Positions 2,189 through 28,924 of a stretch of 64,000 nt of DNA are shown here, piece after piece; positions within the stretch are counted from its first letter, which is position 1; every line of letters starts with the position of its first letter. Made by a program: the position numbers and the translations under genes. The notes under the pieces are model-generated. The model searched no databases. It was not told where the DNA came from and saw nothing but the letters and a program-made list of their open reading frames with translations. The stretch spans positions 1 through 64,000 of the IMG/VR virus record IMGVR_UViG_3300037010_001702. One strand, written 5' to 3'.

Positions 2189-5100
2189 TTACTTCTTGCT
2201 CAATTCATTTTCAAGGAGTGCAACTCTAGCATCCAGTGCCTTTATAGCTTCAATAAGAACAGGGACTATTTTAGAGTAGTCAACTGTCTTGTAAACATCG
2301 CCATCAATTTGAACAGAGTCAGTTACTATTTCTGGCATTACAGCTTCGACTTGGTCTGCAAGAATACCATAGTCATGTTTACCAGCCTTGAATGAAGTGT
2401 GGGCAATTCCCGACTTCCAGTCAAATGTACCACCGTCAAGCTGTTTAAGAATACTAATTGGGTTAGCAATAACTTTGAAGTTTTCCTTAAGGCGTGGGTC
2501 AGAGTAAGCAGTTACATTACCGCCAGCCACCATATTACCAGATGGATCTGAGTACCAAGACCATGCTGCGCGATTCCACCCGCCTAGACCAAAATAGCCA
2601 TCAGCTCTAATACCCATCTTAACAGCGTAAGCATCATTCCAGAAAGTCATACCAGCAAGATTTGAATCACCTGTACCACTAGCCCTGACAATCACTGAAC
2701 CTCTAGTAGCACCACCATCTTGAGACATTGCCATGCTAGTTGTTACACCAAACATAGGATTTGTCTGTTGTGTTGCTGAGAAGTAGGTAGCATTTCCTAC
2801 CGTCAAGTTATTAGCAGTACCAGTTGCGTTGGTAAGAACAACAGCTGAAGGCGTGCCAAGGTTTGGGGTTACAAGCGTTGGAGATGTAGATAGAACAACA
2901 GCTCCGGTACCAGTTGAAGAACCAAATCCTGCAGACCATGTACCACTCGTAATTGTTCCTAGCGTTGTAATTTGGGATTGATTTGCAAGAACGCTAATAG
3001 TGTTACCAGAGATACCAACACCGGTTCCAGCTGAAAGAACAGCAGCGCTGAACTGTGCCCACGTAACAGGAGATGTATCTACCGTAGTTACTGTTGATGT
3101 AACTATCCAGCCTGTATTTGACTGAGATGTTCCGCTTGTTACAAGAACAGCAGCACCATTGAACTCATTAATTGGTGTTGATGCATCCATATCAGCTGCC
3201 CGAGACCAAGCTGAAGTGCTTACAACGTAGATACCATTTTCAGAAGATGTAGTTTGGTTCTTTACGAGAACTCTTGTGCCAACTGTAACCGCGATGCCAT
3301 CAATAGTTTGCGTTCCACTACGTGTGATGTTAGTGGTAGTAGCAACTAAGACCGTGTTCTTCCAGGTCAATCCTGCGGCTACAGCGTCAACGTAGTTCTT
3401 ATTAGCTACTTGTGTTCCCAATGTAGGAGTGTCGGCTACTGTAATGCTTTGACCGGTAGGAATGGTAATTGAACCAGTCATTACCCCGCCACTCAGCGAC
3501 AGCTTAGACGTGTCACTAGGGTGAACGTGATCAGCGCGAGCAACTTCAAAATCATAACCAACAGCAGCAGTTCCATCCATTAGTGGGACAGTGCTTGAAA
3601 GTCCTGTAATCGAGTTGAATGAAACACCCGTAGCAATGCCAATGCTTGGCGCTACAAGAAGAGGACCATTGTTGAATACAAGTTGACCAGTTCCAGTCTC
3701 ATCAGAGATAACACCGGCGAGTTGCGCTGAAGTTGTAGATGCAAACTGCGCTAGAGGACCACTTGTTACTGCGGTGGCTGGATCGCTGGGGTGAACGTGA
3801 TCTTGTCTAGCGACAAGAGTGGATGTTCCAACAGTAGCTGCACCAGGGACCAGCGGTGTTGCAACTGCAAGGCCAGTAATAGAGTTGAATGAGGTACCAG
3901 TAGCAACGCCGATATTAGGAGTTACAAGGATTGCTCCAGCTATTGTTGGTGAAGTGTCCATTACAAACTTGGAACCAGTACCAGTTTGAGATGCTACAGA
4001 CGTAGCGTTTCCAACAGAGGTAATTGGACCGGTTAGGTTTGCATTAGTCGTGACTGTAGAAGCATTACCAGTTAAGTTACCGGTGAATGTAGTCGCGTAA
4101 ACATTCTGCCAAACAGCAGAAGGCGTACCAATCGTGTAGCTGTTGGTAGCAGATGGAACCATTGATCCACCAATGCTACCACCGCTTGAGCTAGCTGGTG
4201 TATATCCAAGCGCTGTGATAATATCGGCTGAAGAAATAGTAGTTCCGATAGTAATACGGCCCTTTGCATCAACAGTAACTTTCGTATATGTTCCTGCCGT
4301 AACACCAGTGTTACCGAGAGTTGCAGTAAGAATAACGTCAGACGTACCATCAATGTTTGGAGTTGATCCAAGAAGATCACCAGAAAGATTTATCTTTCTA
4401 GCATTCTTCCAGCTGGTGGCGGTGCTTGCATTACCGATAAGATCAGCAGTAACAATACCAGCAGCGAAACTTCCAGCTGCATCTCTAGCAACCAATGTTG
4501 ATCCCACGTTCGCAGCTGTCGCATTAGAGGTAATGGTTGGATTGCCAGAAACACCATCAGGGTTAGTAATTGAAATACCAAGACCGCTTACGGCTAGACT
4601 TATCGTGTTAAAGCTGTTAGTGCCAATATTAGCAAGTAAACCAGTAGAGCTTACACTTGAAATACTTGTTAGATTTCCATTTAACGGTTGAGCATCGGTG
4701 ATTCCGTAACCATTAAGAGTTGTTGGCTTACCATCTATAGATGTCCACGCAAGAGTTGAAGTACCTGCAGTGACGCGACCGTATGTATCAACCGTAATGC
4801 CTGCATAATTTCCAGCAGCAACTCCAGTAGTTGCAAGGTCAATGTTGTCAGCATTAACTACGATGCGGGAGGTTGAAGCTGTGCCAATGTCAAACGTGTG
4901 ACCAGTAAGAGTAAGACCAGCTCCTGCAGTGAAGTCACCTGGACGGCTAAAGACCGTGAAAATAAGTGCGGTAACATCAACGGTGATAGTGCCAGTGGTT
5001 GTTAAAACCCATGAGCTGTTACCAGAAGATGTACCAACAGCAACGTAGATAAGCGCGCCAGTTTTAATCTCAACTACTGGCTGATTGTTAGAATCAAGGT

Positions 5101-20394: not shown

Positions 20395-20413
20395 GCCAGG
20401 CAGCTCTCAGGAT

Positions 20414-20439
20414 ATGAAGGGAGCCTTGGCTCCCTTCAT
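20414..20439 (+). terminator. Hairpin, probable terminator
   Basis: ATGAAGGGAGCC-TT-GGCTCCCTTCAT. Confidence 0.65.
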
Positions 20440-20587
20440 TGTCTTAGATTACTTATCCCGCGATGAAGTGTGATGGGTGAAAGAGGAATGGGCAATGATG
20501 GTCAGAATGCAGCCAACTTGGAGTTGATCTCTCTGTTAAAACTGGGCCTACTGCCGATAAGTATTAATTCGATTACTTAGATAGTCT

Positions 20588-20618
20588 AAATAGGAGTCTT
20601 TGGGCTCCTATTTTGTTT
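20588..20618 (+). terminator. Hairpin with U-tract, probable terminator
   Basis: AAATAGGAGTC-TTTG-GGCTCCTATTT-TGTTT. Confidence 0.6.
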
Positions 20619-20668
20619 GAGCAGTGATAAATAAAAGGTAATAATTACCATATAACCTGCTCGAGAAT

Positions 20669-21643
20669 ATGAAACTACTTGTACTTGCAAACGCGCACCA
20701 TGAACTTATCAAGGAAGCTACGGTTGGAACTGCCAGCGTAGCCCTAGCCATGGAGAAGATGATCAAGTTTATCCAACGAAAGATGGATGAAAAGCTCATC
20801 AGGATTCCTGGAATTGAGCATTTTCACAATTCCACTGACAGCGGGTATGGTATTCGCTATGTATTTTCAGGTACAACGCGCTGTCTTCGCTTCAACTGGG
20901 GTTCTGAAGCTTCAGCTGGTAAGACTAGTGAGATTCACTCCATCGACATCTTCAATGGTAAGTCTGCTGATCCAACGTTCAGCATTCACTGCAAGGGTAT
21001 TTCCTTCGCGCAATCACTGCCAGCTCTTGTAGCAATTCTTCATTCTCCAACAATTGGTCATGTTCGTGCCTTCCCAGTTAGCCCTGTTGAAGCTTTGTCT
21101 GAGTCAGTTATCATGGAAGTTGCGCGGGATGCATTCTCGCCTGAAGCTGCTCTCAATGACTTCCTCGGAAAACTCGCAGCAGGCAAGACATTCACCCGTT
21201 CTGAATTCATTGGTTCCTACCACATTATCAATGCCGGTATCTTTGACACAGTCTTCAGGGACTTCAATGACAGGTTTCAAATTGATGCCAGGAGAGTTTC
21301 GCTAAAGCCAGGTTCGAAGATCGACTCTCTTAAGGACTCTATTCTTTCAAAGGCAGGAGTCATCACTGTAACCCAAGGTGGTACAGATGAATCCTTCATG
21401 AAGACCAAGCAGGAAGAGCAAGTTGAAAAGGATACCGCTGAACGCATTCCATTTGGTGACACCCTTGAACACTTGGAAGGTCTCGTAACAGGTACCATAA
21501 AGGGGGCATTCAACGCTCTCTTTGTTGCTGGTAAGGGTGGATCGTTTTCAGGTTCAACTCTTGTAAATGTTATGGTTAATAATTCATCAATAAATTTAAA
21601 TGATAATCATCAAACCGAAAACAAGATTGCCAATCATAATTAA
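20669..21643 (+). CDS. AAA-ATPase N-terminal half (291-aa N-extein) plus 33-aa N-intein
   Basis: Ends NALFVAGKGG|SFSGSTLVNVMV...; TAAATA at 20628. Confidence 0.8.
   Translation: MKLLVLANAHHELIKEATVGTASVALAMEKMIKFIQRKMDEKLIRIPGIEHFHNSTDSGYGIRYVFSGTTRCLRFNWGSEASAGKTSEIHSIDIFNGKSADPTFSIHCKGISFAQSLPALVAILHSPTIGHVRAFPVSPVEALSESVIMEVARDAFSPEAALNDFLGKLAAGKTFTRSEFIGSYHIINAGIFDTVFRDFNDRFQIDARRVSLKPGSKIDSLKDSILSKAGVITVTQGGTDESFMKTKQEEQVEKDTAERIPFGDTLEHLEGLVTGTIKGAFNALFVAGKGGSFSGSTLVNVMVNNSSINLNDNHQTENKIANHN
21542..21640 (+). mobile_element. Split intein N-fragment (Ser1)
   Basis: SFSGSTLVNV matches intein block A (C/S-F-x-G-x-T-x-V), directly after half a Walker A motif. Confidence 0.75.
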
Positions 21644-22655
21644 AACGATAGAAGAAATTATTCCTCATCTTAAACGAGTATCAAAAAGCTGGCGATCTTT
21701 AACACCACAAGTTAAAGATAGCCTTTTATCACTTCTTTCAAGAAATCCAATTTATTCAGGAATGAATCTATTTCATCTAGACTTACGTAAAGATGTTTTA
21801 CACATGCGATCCGGGACATTTTCTAGTGATCAGTATAAAAATATATTTGGATGGAGTGAAGAAGAAATAAGTTCATTAATAAAAAGTAAGGATAATATAA
21901 TAAAAAATTCTTCTGGAGGTTTAACTCCGTGTATGAAAGAATTTTGGATTAAACATCACGGATTATCTGAAAAAGATGCTATTAAAAAAGTATCAGAAAT
22001 CCAAACTAAACTAAGTAAAAGAAAAAAGAAAACTGTTTTTAACAATCCAATTTCTTTACAATATTATTTGCAAAGGGGTATTAATAAAGATGAAGCAATT
22101 AGGGCACAAAGTGAAGTTCAAAAGAAAAGAAGAAATAACTGTATCGAGTATTGGTTAAACAAGGGATATTCAAAGGAATATGCGAAAAAGGAAATATCTA
22201 ATTTACAAAAACTTAGAAGTAAATTAAGTATAGAATATTGGTTACACAGAGGATACACATTAGAACAAGCACAAAAAGAAGCCTATCTTGCACAAAAAGC
22301 TCAGATGCCATCAAAAGTTTCAAAAATATCCAAAAAATTTTTTACCGAATTATTATTAGAGCTTAAAAAATATGGTTATTTAGAAAATGAATTCAAGTAT
22401 GGTGATAACGAAGAATGCATTTATATTAGTTCAAAAAGACGCATATATTTAGATTTTTATCATCAATTAACTAAGAAGGTAATAGAATTTGATGGAAAAT
22501 ATTGGCATTCTGAAAAAACCATAGAAGATGAAAAAAGAGATAAAATGCTAAAAGAATTAGGTTATTCGGTTTTAAGAATTCCAGAAACATATGATAATGA
22601 ACTTTGGAATAAATATCTTATTCAGGCTGTTGAATTCATCGTAAAGGAAAATTAA
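21600..22655 (+). CDS. Free-standing endonuclease (Vsr/DUF559-like) inserted between the intein halves
   Basis: LDFY...VIEFDGKYWH...DEKRDKMLKELGYSVLRI; four [EQ]-[YF]-[WY]-[LI]-x-x-G...A...Q repeats; AT-rich. Confidence 0.8.
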   Translation: MIIIKPKTRLPIIIKTIEEIIPHLKRVSKSWRSLTPQVKDSLLSLLSRNPIYSGMNLFHLDLRKDVLHMRSGTFSSDQYKNIFGWSEEEISSLIKSKDNIIKNSSGGLTPCMKEFWIKHHGLSEKDAIKKVSEIQTKLSKRKKKTVFNNPISLQYYLQRGINKDEAIRAQSEVQKKRRNNCIEYWLNKGYSKEYAKKEISNLQKLRSKLSIEYWLHRGYTLEQAQKEAYLAQKAQMPSKVSKISKKFFTELLLELKKYGYLENEFKYGDNEECIYISSKRRIYLDFYHQLTKKVIEFDGKYWHSEKTIEDEKRDKMLKELGYSVLRIPETYDNELWNKYLIQAVEFIVKEN

Positions 22656-22656
22656 T

Positions 22657-23067
22657 ATGCAGTATATACAAGTCAATATGTATTGGCTAGAGCAGTATGT
22701 TAAAGACACATATAAGATTGAAGAACTAGAAATTGGGCACTTGTACAAAATTTCTGATATAATGATTGAAACCCCAAATGGGTTTAAACCTACTATTGGA
22801 TTTATAAAGAAAAAGGGAAATCAAGCTTTTGTTGAATTTGAGTCAGGTATCAAGCATGAGTGTCTTTCCAATCATATGTATATTGCCGAAAATGGAAAAG
22901 CACATTTTGTTTATAATATGGTGCCAGGAGATAAAATTCGTACAAGAAATGGTATTGATATTGTTAAAGCTGTAACAATTACCGAAAATGAGATGTTTGC
23001 TTATGACTTATCTGTTGATTCTAATGATCAAATTTTTGTAACAGCAGATGGTATTCAAAGCCATAAT
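22657..23067 (+). mobile_element. Split intein C-fragment (137 aa; His-Asn|Thr+1)
   Basis: ETPNGFKP, block B ECLSNH, PGDKIRT.NG, block F AYDLSV, block G DGIQSHN|T. Confidence 0.9.
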
Positions 23068-23709
23068 ACAGGTAAGACACAGACTGTTGAAAAGGTTCTT
23101 CATAATCATGGTTTGTCAGATGGTAACGGTTACTTCAAGAATACTGGTACGGCTTCCGCACTCGGTATCTACTCGCTTCTCTACAAGCACCGCGACGGCA
23201 TTCTTTTGTTTGATGACTCCGATGGAGCTTTGGCCGATCAAGATGGTCGTAACCTTATCAAAGCAGCTACTGATACCAAGAAGCACCGCAAGATTGCTTG
23301 GAACAAAAAGTCTGCAGGTATGTATGATCCAGAACATGAAGATGCAGAAGAGTATGCAGAAGATGCGGACAAGTTGCCACGGCATTTTGAATTCACTGGG
23401 CGCATCATCTTTATTTCTAACTTGCCATTAAGCAAGCTTGATCCAGATGGTGCGCTTCGAACTCGAGCCTTCGTCATCAACATCGATCCAACGGATGAAG
23501 AGCTTTACGAGCACATGGAAAAGATTCTTCACGAAATTAAACTCGAAGATGGCCTTTCACTCTCAAATGAAGAACGTGAGAATGTTCTAACAGTTGTCAA
23601 GAAGTCAAAGCGCAAGGGAGATGTATCTCTTCGTAAGCTTGTTCGAGCTCTTAACCTTGCAGCATCTGGTGCGCCCAACTGGGAGCGCCTGGTTTCCCTA
23701 TATGCATGA
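22657..23709 (+). CDS. C-intein plus AAA-ATPase C-terminal half (213-aa C-extein)
   Basis: SHN|TGKT, LLFDDSD, LIKAATDT, FEFTGRIIFISN, ALRTRA, SLR. Confidence 0.85.
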   Translation: MQYIQVNMYWLEQYVKDTYKIEELEIGHLYKISDIMIETPNGFKPTIGFIKKKGNQAFVEFESGIKHECLSNHMYIAENGKAHFVYNMVPGDKIRTRNGIDIVKAVTITENEMFAYDLSVDSNDQIFVTADGIQSHNTGKTQTVEKVLHNHGLSDGNGYFKNTGTASALGIYSLLYKHRDGILLFDDSDGALADQDGRNLIKAATDTKKHRKIAWNKKSAGMYDPEHEDAEEYAEDADKLPRHFEFTGRIIFISNLPLSKLDPDGALRTRAFVINIDPTDEELYEHMEKILHEIKLEDGLSLSNEERENVLTVVKKSKRKGDVSLRKLVRALNLAASGAPNWERLVSLYA

Positions 23710-23730
23710 CCTGTTTTTGCCGATTTCTAT

Positions 23731-23759
23731 AATACTCTTATCTAAACAATGAGAGTATT
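23731..23759 (+). promoter_or_regulatory. Hairpin sequestering the RBS of the downstream endonuclease
   Basis: AATACTCTTAT-ctaaaca-ATGAGAGTATT, 5 nt before the ATG at 23765. Confidence 0.55.
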
Positions 23760-23764
23760 TTATT

Positions 23765-24595
23765 ATGGAAAAGAAATATGTAAGAGCATCAAACAGAAAA
23801 CATCACATAGTTTATAAAACGACATGTATAGAAACAAATGCATTCTATATAGGCATGCACAGCACTGATAATCTAAATGATGGTTATCTGGGAAGTGGGG
23901 TTAGGCTTAGAAAATCGATTAGAAAATATGGTGAAGCTGCACATAAGACTGAAATCTTATTCGAATTAGAAAATAGACAGGCTGCATCAGATAAAGAAAG
24001 AGAACTTATTACTGCTGAACTAAGAAAGGATCCAAAGTGTATGAACTGCGGACCTGGTGGTGAAGGCTATTATGATAGACCAGCTACTAAAGAAGAAACG
24101 TCAGCTAAACTTTCTAAAGCTTCTAAGCAATATGTTCGCACTAAAGAGTGGTATGAAAAAGTAGTAGCTACTCGAAAAGCAAACAACAGTTATACTCATA
24201 CCCCAGAAGCAAGAGAAAAGATTAGAGCTTCTCTAACCGGTAAAACTTTAACTGAAGAGCACAAGAAGAAAATATCAGAAGGTGGTACTGGGCAGAAGAG
24301 AACAGAAGAAACATGTTTGAATATCTCTAAGTCTCTAAAGGGAAAGAAGTTTAAATCTGGGGTAGATAGAAAACCTGTATCAGAAGAAGCTAAAGAGAAT
24401 ATTAGACAAGATCGCATTGGTAAAAAGCACTCTGAAGAAGCCAAATCTAATATGCGAAAACCTCATAAAAAGCCAAAAACCCGCCAATGTACTGTAGATG
24501 GTATAAATATCTATCAATCAGTAAGTCAAATGGTTAAAGCTTTAGGTTCTGGTCAAAATAGTCGGAGATCACCAAATTTTAGGTGCATAATATGA
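23765..24595 (+). CDS. Seg-like GIY-YIG homing endonuclease with NUMOD3 repeats
   Basis: IVYKTT...FYIGMHST.NLNDGYLGSG; HTPEAREKI, TEEHKKKIS, HSEEAKSNM. Confidence 0.9.
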   Translation: MEKKYVRASNRKHHIVYKTTCIETNAFYIGMHSTDNLNDGYLGSGVRLRKSIRKYGEAAHKTEILFELENRQAASDKERELITAELRKDPKCMNCGPGGEGYYDRPATKEETSAKLSKASKQYVRTKEWYEKVVATRKANNSYTHTPEAREKIRASLTGKTLTEEHKKKISEGGTGQKRTEETCLNISKSLKGKKFKSGVDRKPVSEEAKENIRQDRIGKKHSEEAKSNMRKPHKKPKTRQCTVDGINIYQSVSQMVKALGSGQNSRRSPNFRCII

Positions 24596-26016: not shown

Positions 26017-26349
26017 ATGACCAAAAAGCTAAAGTCCTCCAGAAAGCGTAGAACCGATAGATCTCACATCATCTATCTTCTTACTAACTGCGTTACCTCG
26101 GAAACCTACATTGGTCTGGCTGTTTGTGTAGATCGTTCGGGCAAGGAAACTTTAGCTGCTCGTTGGTCACGTCACGTAGGTCGTGCCTTCAATCAAGACA
26201 AAGGCTGGAAGCTTTGCGAATCCATTCGTAAGTATGGTCCAGAAGTTTTCCACAAGGAAATCATTTGCTTTGTTCGTGGTAAGGCTGCAGCCCACACTCT
26301 CGAAACCCAACTGAAGAAAGAAGGCCGCCCGGCCTTGAATACTGTATGA
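26017..26349 (+). CDS. Small GIY-YIG nuclease
   Basis: IIYLLTN...YIGL...RW..H...L.ESIRKYG...E. Confidence 0.75.
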   Translation: MTKKLKSSRKRRTDRSHIIYLLTNCVTSETYIGLAVCVDRSGKETLAARWSRHVGRAFNQDKGWKLCESIRKYGPEVFHKEIICFVRGKAAAHTLETQLKKEGRPALNTV

Positions 26350-26642: not shown

Positions 26643-27275
26643 ATGTTTCAAAATCAAGAAACCTTTCTGCCTGGTATGCGGCGACATACCTTCAAGCCCA
26701 AGACAGTTTTCCACCGGGTTGCTACCTTCACCTTCGAAGAAGGTATGTATGTTATCAACCACATCAAACAGAAGAATCTCCATGGTGTTGAAGTTGAGGG
26801 TATCACTGATCCGCAATCTACTCGCATCCGTATGATCGCAAATGGTCAAACTGCTTGCGTTAAATGCGGCCTGAAAGGTAATCACTTCTACATTGAACGC
26901 CACAAGAAAGATTTGGCTAGCAAGTACAGTCTCAATCTGTATGCTCTCACAGAAGATGGTTTTGAAGTCATGATGACGTGGGATCACATCATCCCTAAGT
27001 CTCTAGGTGGTTCAAACCGGCTGTGGAATGCTCAGTGCATGTGTCAAAAGTGCAATGCTGCTAAAGGCAATTATCTGAGTTTGGCTGAGCTGGTTGAGAT
27101 TGGCAGTCATAAGAATGCTCACCTCATGTATAGCTTGCCGCAAATACAACTTAACAAGGACAACGGAATTACACGTACTTTGAAAGATGTTCGTGAGATG
27201 AACCAGAAATGGGAAAATACTCAAGCTGTGCCAGTGTTTAAGAAAGCTGACCTAACGGAAACTGCAAATGTCTAA
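26643..27275 (+). CDS. HNH endonuclease-domain protein
   Basis: CVKCG...TWDHIIPKSLGGSN...NAQCMCQKCNAAKG. Confidence 0.85.
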   Translation: MFQNQETFLPGMRRHTFKPKTVFHRVATFTFEEGMYVINHIKQKNLHGVEVEGITDPQSTRIRMIANGQTACVKCGLKGNHFYIERHKKDLASKYSLNLYALTEDGFEVMMTWDHIIPKSLGGSNRLWNAQCMCQKCNAAKGNYLSLAELVEIGSHKNAHLMYSLPQIQLNKDNGITRTLKDVREMNQKWENTQAVPVFKKADLTETANV

Positions 27276-27958: not shown

Positions 27959-28924
27959 ATGTCCCATGTTGCTACTCTCTCCTTTCAGACCTCCACAAAC
28001 AAGTGGGTGGCCTCCTTCAACGGAAAGATTCTGGCTTCCTCTCCTAACAAGGACTATGTGATAGGTAATATCCGCTCCGGTCGTTGCACTAAAGCCGTAG
28101 CTGCGGGTGTAACTGAAGTTCGTGAGGTTGGCGAAGCTACTGTGAATGTTACAACTGGAAAGACCGAGAAGGTTGATCGTTTTTCGATCAATGAACGTTT
28201 CGACTTTATGACCGACTTTGTTAACATGGTTGCTGACCACACCTGTGCTTCAGTTATCGTAACTGGTGAAGGTGGTCTTGGAAAAACTTTCACAGTCAAC
28301 AAAGCCCTTCAAAATGCCGGTCTCCAAAATACTGCTGATCTGGTCGGGTTCGGATCTGACTCCCTTTTGAATCCTTCTGTGTCTGCGAAGATTTACTCAG
28401 TAGTCAAAGGCTACTCGACTGCTAAGGGTCTCTACCGCACTCTCTACGAAAACCGTAATCGTATTGTGATCTTCGATGACTGTGATTCTATTCTCCGTGA
28501 CCCTGTTGCCCTGAACCTTTTGAAAGGTGCTCTCGATTCCTATGATCGTCGCATCATTTCTTGGAATGCCGAGTCTTTCGGTGACGATGATCTTCCTCGC
28601 TCGTTTGAATTCACTGGTGGTGTGATCTTCATCTCGAATTTCCCACTCTACAAAATCGATCAAGCTATCCGGTCTCGTGCAATATGTGTTGATTTGTCCA
28701 TGACGACTGCTCAGAAGATTGAACGCATGGGAGCTATCATCAAGGGGGATGACTTCTTGCCTGAATACGAATTGAACACCAAGAAAATGGCTCTTGCTTT
28801 CCTCGACAAGATGAAAGATGAAGCCACGGATTTGAATCTGCGGACTTTGATTGCTGTTACGAAGGTTGCAGGTCGTGGAGATAACTGGGAACGGCGGGCA
28901 GAATACCTGTTGAATGCTGCATAA
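27959..28924 (+). CDS. AAA-family ATPase (intact paralogue of the split gene)
   Basis: TGEGGLGKT, IFDDCD, LLKGALDS, FEFTGGVIFISN, AIRSRA, NLR. Confidence 0.85.
   Translation: MSHVATLSFQTSTNKWVASFNGKILASSPNKDYVIGNIRSGRCTKAVAAGVTEVREVGEATVNVTTGKTEKVDRFSINERFDFMTDFVNMVADHTCASVIVTGEGGLGKTFTVNKALQNAGLQNTADLVGFGSDSLLNPSVSAKIYSVVKGYSTAKGLYRTLYENRNRIVIFDDCDSILRDPVALNLLKGALDSYDRRIISWNAESFGDDDLPRSFEFTGGVIFISNFPLYKIDQAIRSRAICVDLSMTTAQKIERMGAIIKGDDFLPEYELNTKKMALAFLDKMKDEATDLNLRTLIAVTKVAGRGDNWERRAEYLLNAA

Follow-up and report, generated by a model that had tools for sequence, protein, structure and literature searches.

The window analyzed here, a stretch of 64,000 nucleotides (nt) from the IMG/VR virus record IMGVR_UViG_3300037010_001702, contains at positions 20669–23709 the fractured gene of a P-loop ATPase. 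The locus very probably encodes a genuine, functional and atypically split intein, whose halves are fused to the two ATPase fragments and whose break holds the gene of a free-standing homing endonuclease. Coordinates count from the first letter of the window, and all features lie on its + strand. Each of the three open reading frames (ORFs) of the locus is in a different frame. ORF1 (20669–21643, 324 amino acids) reads ...ALFVAGKGG followed by SFSGSTLVNVMV and stops 33 residues past this junction; its C-terminal part is ...GAFNALFVAGKGG, then SFSGSTLVNVMVNNSSINLNDNHQTENKIANHN and the stop codon. ORF2 (21600–22655, 351 amino acids), in a frame other than that of ORF1, overlaps the end of ORF1 by 44 nt. 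ORF3 (22657–23709, 350 amino acids) starts one base past the ORF2 stop, and its first 137 residues hold the sequences ...ECLSNH..., ...YDLSV... and ...GIQSHN, after which comes TGKT. Over roughly 21560–23070 the G+C content falls from ~45% to 25–30%.

The original prediction for this locus had placed an intein between GKGG and TGKT of the ATPase, regarded it as split in reality and not only in appearance, and assigned it a functional N-terminal half (IntN) of 12–16 amino acids, the nucleophiles Ser1 and Thr+1 (the first residues of the intein and of the C-extein, respectively) and a Vsr/DUF559-like endonuclease between the halves. Its statements on the sequence itself (the ORF ends, the junction, intein blocks B, F and G, TGKT, a joined ATPase of 504 amino acids and GEGGLGKT in a paralogue) are all correct, and the comparisons below bear out each of these proposals.

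An intein in the Walker A loop of a P-loop ATPase

A scan of IMG/VR with the locus gave 80 related loci. In ~70 loci that lack an intein, residue 291 of ORF1 continues directly into residue 138 of ORF3 (residue 1 of the C-extein), in the same frame and with no gap. Loci L008, L009 and L010 read ...NALFVAGKGG immediately followed by TGKT..., and the junction is also present in 39 contiguous proteins of 490–507 amino acids that were retrieved with the end of ORF1 as query. Because these intein-less orthologues join both exteins directly, the intein begins precisely at Ser (21542) and ends at Asn (23067), with GKGG directly before it and TGKT directly after it, as predicted. The joined exteins (291 + 213 = 504 amino acids) have the length of the intein-less orthologue, and removal of the intein gives GKGGTGKT, that is, the GxxxxGKT of a Walker A loop. 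The N-extein is 78% identical to its counterpart in L008 (4158–5030).

The C-extein matches PHROG 1250 from ORF3 residue 139 onward (E 2e-27) and is 35% identical (E 4e-31) to the product of the paralogue at 27959–28924, in an alignment that begins exactly at TGKT/LGKT; the N-extein has no significant similarity to this paralogue. The family of the C-extein is widespread in T4-like phages, where it is annotated only as "hypothetical protein". Neither a megablast search of the locus against phage genomes nor a tblastn search of ORF1 against phage databases gave a match. To judge from these comparisons, the host is an uncharacterised P-loop ATPase composed of a PHROG 1250 part and an N-terminal region of 290 amino acids. 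Two further observations concern the insertion site. At the +1 position the paralogue has Leu (GEGG-LGKT) and many intein-less orthologues have Val or Ile (VGKT/IGKT), while every intein-bearing allele has Thr. The intein-less orthologue of L039 changes frame between its N- and C-terminal parts precisely where the P-loop is encoded (about 4990–5005); the change may reflect a genuine frameshift or an error of sequencing in a run rich in G.

It took a structure search and a profile of five sequences to identify the C-terminal half of the intein (IntC) as a Hint domain. Pfam and PHROG gave no Hint or intein match for ORF1 and ORF3, and a single-sequence search of the Protein Data Bank (PDB) with IntC gave nothing significant. 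The IntC profile matched VidaL (E 1.3e-9), CatC (1.5e-8) and gp41-1 (1.4e-4) among PDB sequences. An AlphaFold model of IntC by itself, computed from an alignment with 22 relatives, reaches a pLDDT of 87, and its top 50 Foldseek matches in the PDB are all inteins or Hint domains, with VidaL (PDB code 6vgv) as the best (E 1e-7, 26% identity) and the atypically split consensus intein Cat also among them. The model of a contiguous intein from locus L086 (pLDDT 93) likewise has VidaL as its best PDB match (E 2e-9) and only inteins or Hint domains in its top 50. Block B His73, block F Y116-D117, the terminal H136-N137 and Thr+1 are invariant in the 22 relatives. The nucleophiles of the window intein are Ser1 (codon TCG) and Thr+1; position 1 varies between Ser and Cys among the alleles, and Thr+1 is found in all. 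The sole Cys of the window intein, at IntC position 69, precedes the block B His by four residues and is not at a nucleophile position; it is kept in at least 90% of the family and is present in VidaL and Cat too. The structural model and the profile together indicate that the window insert is a class 1 intein of the VidaL-like lineage, in which IntC adopts the Hint fold.

Table 1 Features of the fractured ATPase locus and its paralogue in the window
Feature	Position	Strand	Basis
N-extein of the ATPase, 291 amino acids, ends ...FNALFVAGKGG (first half of Walker A)	20669–21541	+	Collinear with residues 1–291 of contiguous 504-residue orthologues
IntN, 33 amino acids and stop; core S-F-S-G-S-T-L-V-N-V-M-V at 21542–21577	21542–21643	+	Conservation across alleles
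Free-standing homing endonuclease, 351 amino acids	21600–22655	+	Pfam DUF559, PDB profile matches
AAGGA, Shine-Dalgarno-like motif for the IntC fragment, within the final endonuclease codons	22644–22648	+	Same motif in relatives; putative function
IntC, 137 amino acids: IntN-pairing strand, helix alpha-1, block B His73, block F YDLSV, block G SHN	22657–23067	+	Hint fold, conserved residues
C-extein, 213 amino acids and stop, from Thr+1 of TGKT (second half of Walker A)	23068–23709	+	PHROG 1250, paralogue, orthologues
Intein-free paralogue, 321 amino acids, GEGGLGKT at the equivalent position; context, outside the element	27959–28924	+	PHROG 1250, E 2.4e-58

The split and the cassette that carries it

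Both contiguous and split forms of this intein exist at the same site. An exhaustive HMMER search with IntC recovered contiguous intein-bearing orthologous ATPases of 622–664 amino acids (P0024, P0026, P0037 and P0045), and two of these alleles, recovered with their DNA as L085 and L086, are unbroken, contiguous (cis) mini-inteins with the same insertion site; the guanylate kinase and PRA-PH genes that neighbor L085 are those found upstream of split alleles. A further 23 proteins of 343–413 amino acids carry the IntC sequence at 35–100% identity, most of them beginning with it, and where the DNA was recovered, the gene one or two upstream of the IntC gene ends with GKGG and a short IntN. Both ORFs are intact in more than 15 diverged split alleles. 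Of the endonuclease gene, L002/L087 has only a remnant of 305 nt, one frame of which still gives IEFDDKHWH, and L089/L096 has none, with IntN and IntC intact in each case. In the endonuclease-less alleles, stop codons occur in all frames between the intein halves. The intact halves of these loci argue that the split intein still works after the death of the endonuclease, and the comparison of alleles as a whole indicates that the split state is old and maintained. The decayed gene of L002 (5696–6000, equivalent to L087) retains a 43-residue ORF that matches the N-terminus of the endonuclease, the IEFDDKHWH remnant being out of frame; here decay has spared both intein halves (with Cys1) as well as the site upstream of the ATG of IntC.

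The contiguous L086 allele also shows where the intein was opened. Its model has a strand at intein residues 7–12, a second strand at 15–20 and helix alpha-1 at 21–32. The IntN of the window supplies S-F-S-G-S-T and the strand L-V-N-V-M-V, and IntC opens with the partner strand YIQVN, followed by the helix. Because IntN contributes one strand of the hairpin and IntC starts with the other, the break lies in the hairpin turn after strand 7–12, the S1 split site. In an alignment of 15 close alleles, positions 1–12 are conserved, with S3, G4, T6 and N9 invariant. From about position 16 the IntN tails are rich in Asn, Asp and Lys and vary in both sequence and length, to a total IntN of 23–38 amino acids with stops of their own; the last 44 nt of the window tail are those that overlap the endonuclease ORF. 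The ratio of nonsynonymous to synonymous divergence (dN/dS) is 0.3–1.1 for IntN and about 0.1 for IntC. The predicted 12–16 functional residues of IntN are well supported by these alignments; we take the functional core to comprise about 12–14 amino acids and the tail to be probably dispensable. Two split alleles at the same P-loop site, L011 3575–3653 (equivalent to L088) and L089 4252–4290 (equivalent to L096), have an IntN of 13 amino acids in total, CLSADTAIVATQD and CLSADTEINATME, respectively. Both are shorter than the natural IntN of 15 amino acids quoted as "record-short" (PMC13014065).

For the start of the IntC fragment, two ATG codons come into consideration, as the public protein cluster of ORF3 (P0001, 343 amino acids) begins at the second Met (22678, MYWLEQ...). 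We favor the first ATG (22657) because relatives start there, because AAGGA precedes it, and because residues 3–7 form the strand expected to pair with IntN. The AAGGA motif lies 9 nt upstream of this ATG in the window and 8–10 nt upstream across the window, L101, L102 and L099.

In the product of the gene between the halves, a W-x-x-x-G-[YF]-[ST]-x-x-[ED]-A module is repeated in the N-terminal part, and residues about 270–351, at the C-terminus, form a Vsr-like/EDxHD nuclease. ORF2 matches Pfam DUF559 with 29.6 bits (gathering threshold 20.6, E 6.5e-7). As a single sequence against the PDB it reached only E 0.5, to a DUF559 structure; a profile of the nuclease domain matched the DUF559 structure 3hrl (E 1.3e-4) and 3r3p, the catalytic domain of I-Bth0305I (E 2.9e-3). 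Alignment A5 shows E66, D68 and D80 without variation and the YWH-motif His in 6/7 sequences; the E, D, H and D residues fall within ...IEFDGKYWH...D.... These profile matches and residues place ORF2 in the Vsr-like/EDxHD family known from fractured genes. The N-terminal repeats gave no match to the Pfam NUMOD families. The endonucleases of the window (21600–22655), L100 (2898–4004) and L011 (3704–4948) share a homologous N-terminal region of ~216 amino acids (E 3e-21) and differ in the nuclease domain, which is Vsr-like/DUF559 in the window and T5orf172 (GIY-YIG-like) in L100, the endonuclease of L011 being homologous to that of L100 (E 8e-33). From its sequence pattern, this looks like a swap of nuclease domains on one DNA-binding module among endonucleases of the same site.

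Selection on the pieces was compared between the window and L101, its closest diverged relative. In this pair dN/dS is 0.096 for IntC (synonymous divergence, dS, 0.47), 0.16 for the endonuclease (dS 0.36), and 0.15 and 0.08 for the N-extein and the C-extein, respectively (dS about 1.9–2.1). Among the pairs compared, it ranges from 0.07 to 0.10 for IntC and from 0.13 to 0.16 for the endonuclease, with synonymous sites near saturation in the more distant pairs. IntC is under strong purifying selection. The same pair shows that the pieces do not share the history of their host gene: dS is 0.33–0.47 in the cassette and ~2 in the exteins. In 90-nt windows, nucleotide identity is 84–96% exactly across 21548–23077, as against 56–80% (mostly 60–76%) in the N-extein and 63–80% in the C-extein. 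Because the identity of the cassette far exceeds that of the flanking exteins, IntN, endonuclease and IntC have moved between diverged phages as one unit. By this measure the transfer is much more recent than the divergence of the host gene, which is the signature of homing, and the same excess of similarity over the flanks is indirect evidence that ORF2 may cleave the intein-less allele.

Within 4 kb downstream of the fractured gene, the window has three further free-standing genes of homing-endonuclease type, at 23765–24595, 26017–26349 and 26643–27275: a GIY-YIG gene with NUMOD3 (PHROG 314, E 1e-39), a small GIY-YIG gene and an HNH gene. The first of them, likewise low in G+C, comes immediately after the fractured gene.

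Serine at position 1 of the intein

Ser1 is retained in at least 11 diverged split alleles (the window, P0140/L101, L102, P0141, P0142, P0143, P0145, P0146, P0155, L003 and L099). In the five of these with DNA sequence, its codon is TCG or TCA (TCR), and the Cys1 codon is TGT in the four sequenced Cys1 alleles of the same clade (L098, L002 and the cis alleles L085 and L086). Every one of the more distant alleles has Cys1. A tree of the IntC sequences places alleles with Ser1 and with Cys1 in one strongly supported clade, whose internal branching does not settle whether Ser1 arose once; the uniform TCR codons are only suggestive of a single origin. Ser1 lineages that have diverged down to 51% IntC identity (window versus L003) keep all of the catalytic residues, which argues that Ser1 is a stable and presumably active state. 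Trans-splicing by the Ser1 allele would be expected from this conservation.

A search of the IntC columns across the alleles found none that co-varies with Ser1 versus Cys1. One residue deserves mention here. His67 (22855–22857), six residues before the block B His, is present in both the Ser1 and the Cys1 alleles of the close clade and is absent from the distant Cys1 alleles, VidaL and Cat; a Lys precedes it (K-H) in the window subclade only. His67 may correspond to the His of the NX motif in Ser1 inteins.

It is possible, and we put it forward tentatively, that in this VidaL-like lineage Ser replaced Cys as the position-1 nucleophile while the IntC scaffold stayed essentially as it was, and that, if both splice, Ser1 is activated here in a manner unlike that of the PolB-type inteins. 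According to a paper of March 2026, only one natural intein that is both cysteine-less and split atypically is known; it is slow, and "other naturally occurring candidates" are lacking (PMC13014065). The original prediction had called the combination of Ser1/Thr+1 with an atypical split rare, in agreement with this count. The natural cysteine-less split inteins otherwise named in the literature cited here are all in PolB-type polymerases.

Proposed mechanism, alternatives and known systems

In the mechanism that we propose, a class 1 VidaL-like mini-intein occupies the Walker A loop of the 504-residue ATPase, with GKGG on one side and TGKT on the other. Into this intein, at the S1 hairpin turn, the gene of a free-standing EDxHD (Vsr-like) endonuclease would have landed, breaking it into a very short IntN (a core of about 12–14 amino acids and a dispensable tail) and an IntC of 137 amino acids. 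The two ATPase fragments would be translated separately, and the IntN strand would complete the Hint fold of IntC. Ser1 would undergo the N–O acyl shift, Thr+1 would attack the resulting ester, and cyclisation of Asn137 would release the intein and leave a seamless GKGGTGKT P-loop. The endonuclease would cut intein-less alleles in co-infecting phages, with the whole cassette copied in as one unit. The comparisons above establish the anatomy and exact boundaries of the element, the Hint fold of IntC, the purifying selection, the lateral transfer of the cassette and the survival of the split after the endonuclease is lost; the chemistry and the rate of trans-splicing, the target of the endonuclease and the expression signals are the parts of this scheme that we infer.

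Several observations weigh against a functional Ser1 intein and have to be set against this mechanism. Instead of the block B Thr (His-3), the window clade has Leu, VidaL has Ala and some distant alleles have Ser. In published work, replacement of Cys1 by Ser (C1S) is usually found to inactivate an intein, and Ser1 inteins are reported to rely on the NX His (PMC10189870); the IntC alignment yielded no Ser1-specific [KR]-His "NX" motif. A promoter and terminator scan gave no signal above chance, and the endonuclease start has no obvious ribosome-binding site. The element might accordingly be dead or dying: the intein would be inactivated, and the ATPase fragments would be either non-functional, with the paralogue covering for them, or, with no splicing, kept in contact by the intein halves as an enzyme of two non-covalently associated pieces. 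An intein-free paralogue does lie 4 kb downstream of the fractured gene, the missing block B Thr and the weaker nucleophile Ser1, here with no identified NX histidine, fit an inactivated intein, and a phage ribonucleotide reductase is reported to assemble from fragments with no splicing (PMC3045599). Yet the dN/dS of IntC is as low as in the exteins, and the catalytic His, Asp and His-Asn and Thr+1 are invariant over alleles of 35–100% identity; both ORFs are intact in more than 15 diverged alleles, endonuclease-less ones included. The paralogue is only 35% identical to the C-extein and has an unrelated N-terminal region. The break is within the P-loop itself, and because a break inside GxxxxGKT makes it unlikely that a non-covalent two-piece enzyme would work, splicing would be needed. 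We consider an inactivated element unlikely.

The two other explanations, both of which the original prediction had named as alternatives, would remove the split intein altogether. Two frameshift errors in a contiguous intein with a nested endonuclease domain would leave just such a picture, three ORFs that adjoin or overlap and each use another frame, and the apparent split would then be an artefact of sequencing or assembly. The identical arrangement (100% identity) is found, however, in three IMG/VR contigs (L005–L007) from three samples, the metagenomes IMG 3300035180, 3300035181 and 3300037010; IntC-extein proteins occur on 6 contigs and N-fragment proteins on 5; and alleles of 50–93% identity have the same frame layout. 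IntC is preceded by a conserved ATG and AAGGA, and the IntN tails differ in length and have their own stops. Since both intein halves persist intact where the endonuclease has decayed or been lost, with stops in all frames between them in the endonuclease-less alleles, assembly frameshift is ruled out for practical purposes, and we leave it a very small probability. The AT-rich insert could also be removed as RNA, by a group I intron that carries the endonuclease, which would make protein splicing unnecessary; EDxHD endonucleases do occur in group I introns too (PMC2677866, PMC3239194). Rfam found no intron or other RNA family match in 20400–24000 even at E <= 1, and what flanks the insert is coding sequence for an entire Hint domain, which is conserved and under purifying selection. 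Moreover, removal of the endonuclease part alone at the RNA level would leave an intein to splice. We give an RNA intron practically no credence, and a working split intein is the reading that we retain.

The closest precedent for the layout is the set of fractured genes of Dassa et al. (2009), which have in common with the window the three-gene arrangement, overlapping frames, a Vsr-like endonuclease, an origin in phages or metagenomes and hosts of P-loop or replication type. The eight enzyme types in that list do not include the host ATPase of the window. Those inteins are split at the canonical site with one exception, a terminase locus split after motif N1 only, which the window resembles. 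Cys1 and a Cys at +1 are among the five catalytic residues of those inteins, as opposed to Ser1/Thr+1 here. The natural atypically split inteins characterised since then are AceL-TerL, GOS-TerL, VidaL and PolB16 OarG. VidaL (6vgv), natural and atypically split with an IntN of 16 amino acids, cysteine-dependent and with a half-life of about 1 min, is the best structural and profile match of the window intein; the S1 split past strand 7–12 is common to both, as in PolB16 OarG, and VidaL also sits in a P-loop, as its C-extein begins [ST]GK. The window intein differs from it in sequence (20–26% identity), in Ser1/Thr+1 and in its 33-residue IntN with a non-conserved tail. The PolB-hosted cysteine-less intein resembles the window intein in Ser1, a hydroxyl nucleophile at +1, the S1 split and a non-catalytic Cys in the region of block B, but is of another lineage (11–13% identity, rank 28–31 in the fold search). 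It needs the His of the NX motif and can dispense with the block B His, which is invariant in the window family. The endonuclease has its likeness in the I-Bth0305I/EDxHD family (3r3p; PMC3239194), with a C-terminal Vsr-like nuclease bearing E, D, H and D and an N-terminal repeated module of DNA-binding type; this family occurs in fractured genes, and the match of ORF2 to I-Bth0305I is weak (profile E 2.9e-3, as above).

Related inteins interrupt other P-loops. L050 (2549–5450) is a distant orthologue with a different intein allele three residues further along the P-loop (GAGGLGK, then C...HN, then THTVEE), in which a Vsr-like endonuclease gene likewise makes the split after block A (IntN of 20 amino acids). 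Members of the same IntC family interrupt further proteins with a P-loop at ...G, then C...HN, then TGK[ST]. A DnaB-like helicase is contiguous in L090/L092 and split, with an IntN of 16 amino acids, in L091 (1–3023), and a ClpA/B-like ATPase is split, with an IntN of 24 amino acids, in L093 (2804–6306), L094 and L095. Each of the split DnaB-like and ClpA/B-like forms has a free-standing endonuclease between its halves.

The arrangement of a fractured gene with a Vsr-like endonuclease and an atypical split has been described since 2009–2020; new here are the uncharacterised P-loop ATPase as host, the VidaL-like (not PolB) lineage and the Ser1/Thr+1 chemistry. For protein engineering, at least 11 natural Ser1/Thr+1 alleles are available in this family, which share a conserved IntN core of 12 amino acids, are kin to the fast VidaL and have Cys1 sister alleles as controls. 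If both the Ser1 and the Cys1 forms splice, this would be a natural cysteine-independent intein with a synthesisable IntN of 12–14 amino acids, from the same lineage as VidaL, and its Cys1/Ser1 alleles would be a ready-made series for dissecting the requirements of Ser1 inteins. For the biology of the family, a single P-loop site shows the series of empty site, contiguous mini-intein, endonuclease-split intein and split intein without endonuclease, which is the route by which split inteins arise in the proposal of Dassa et al.

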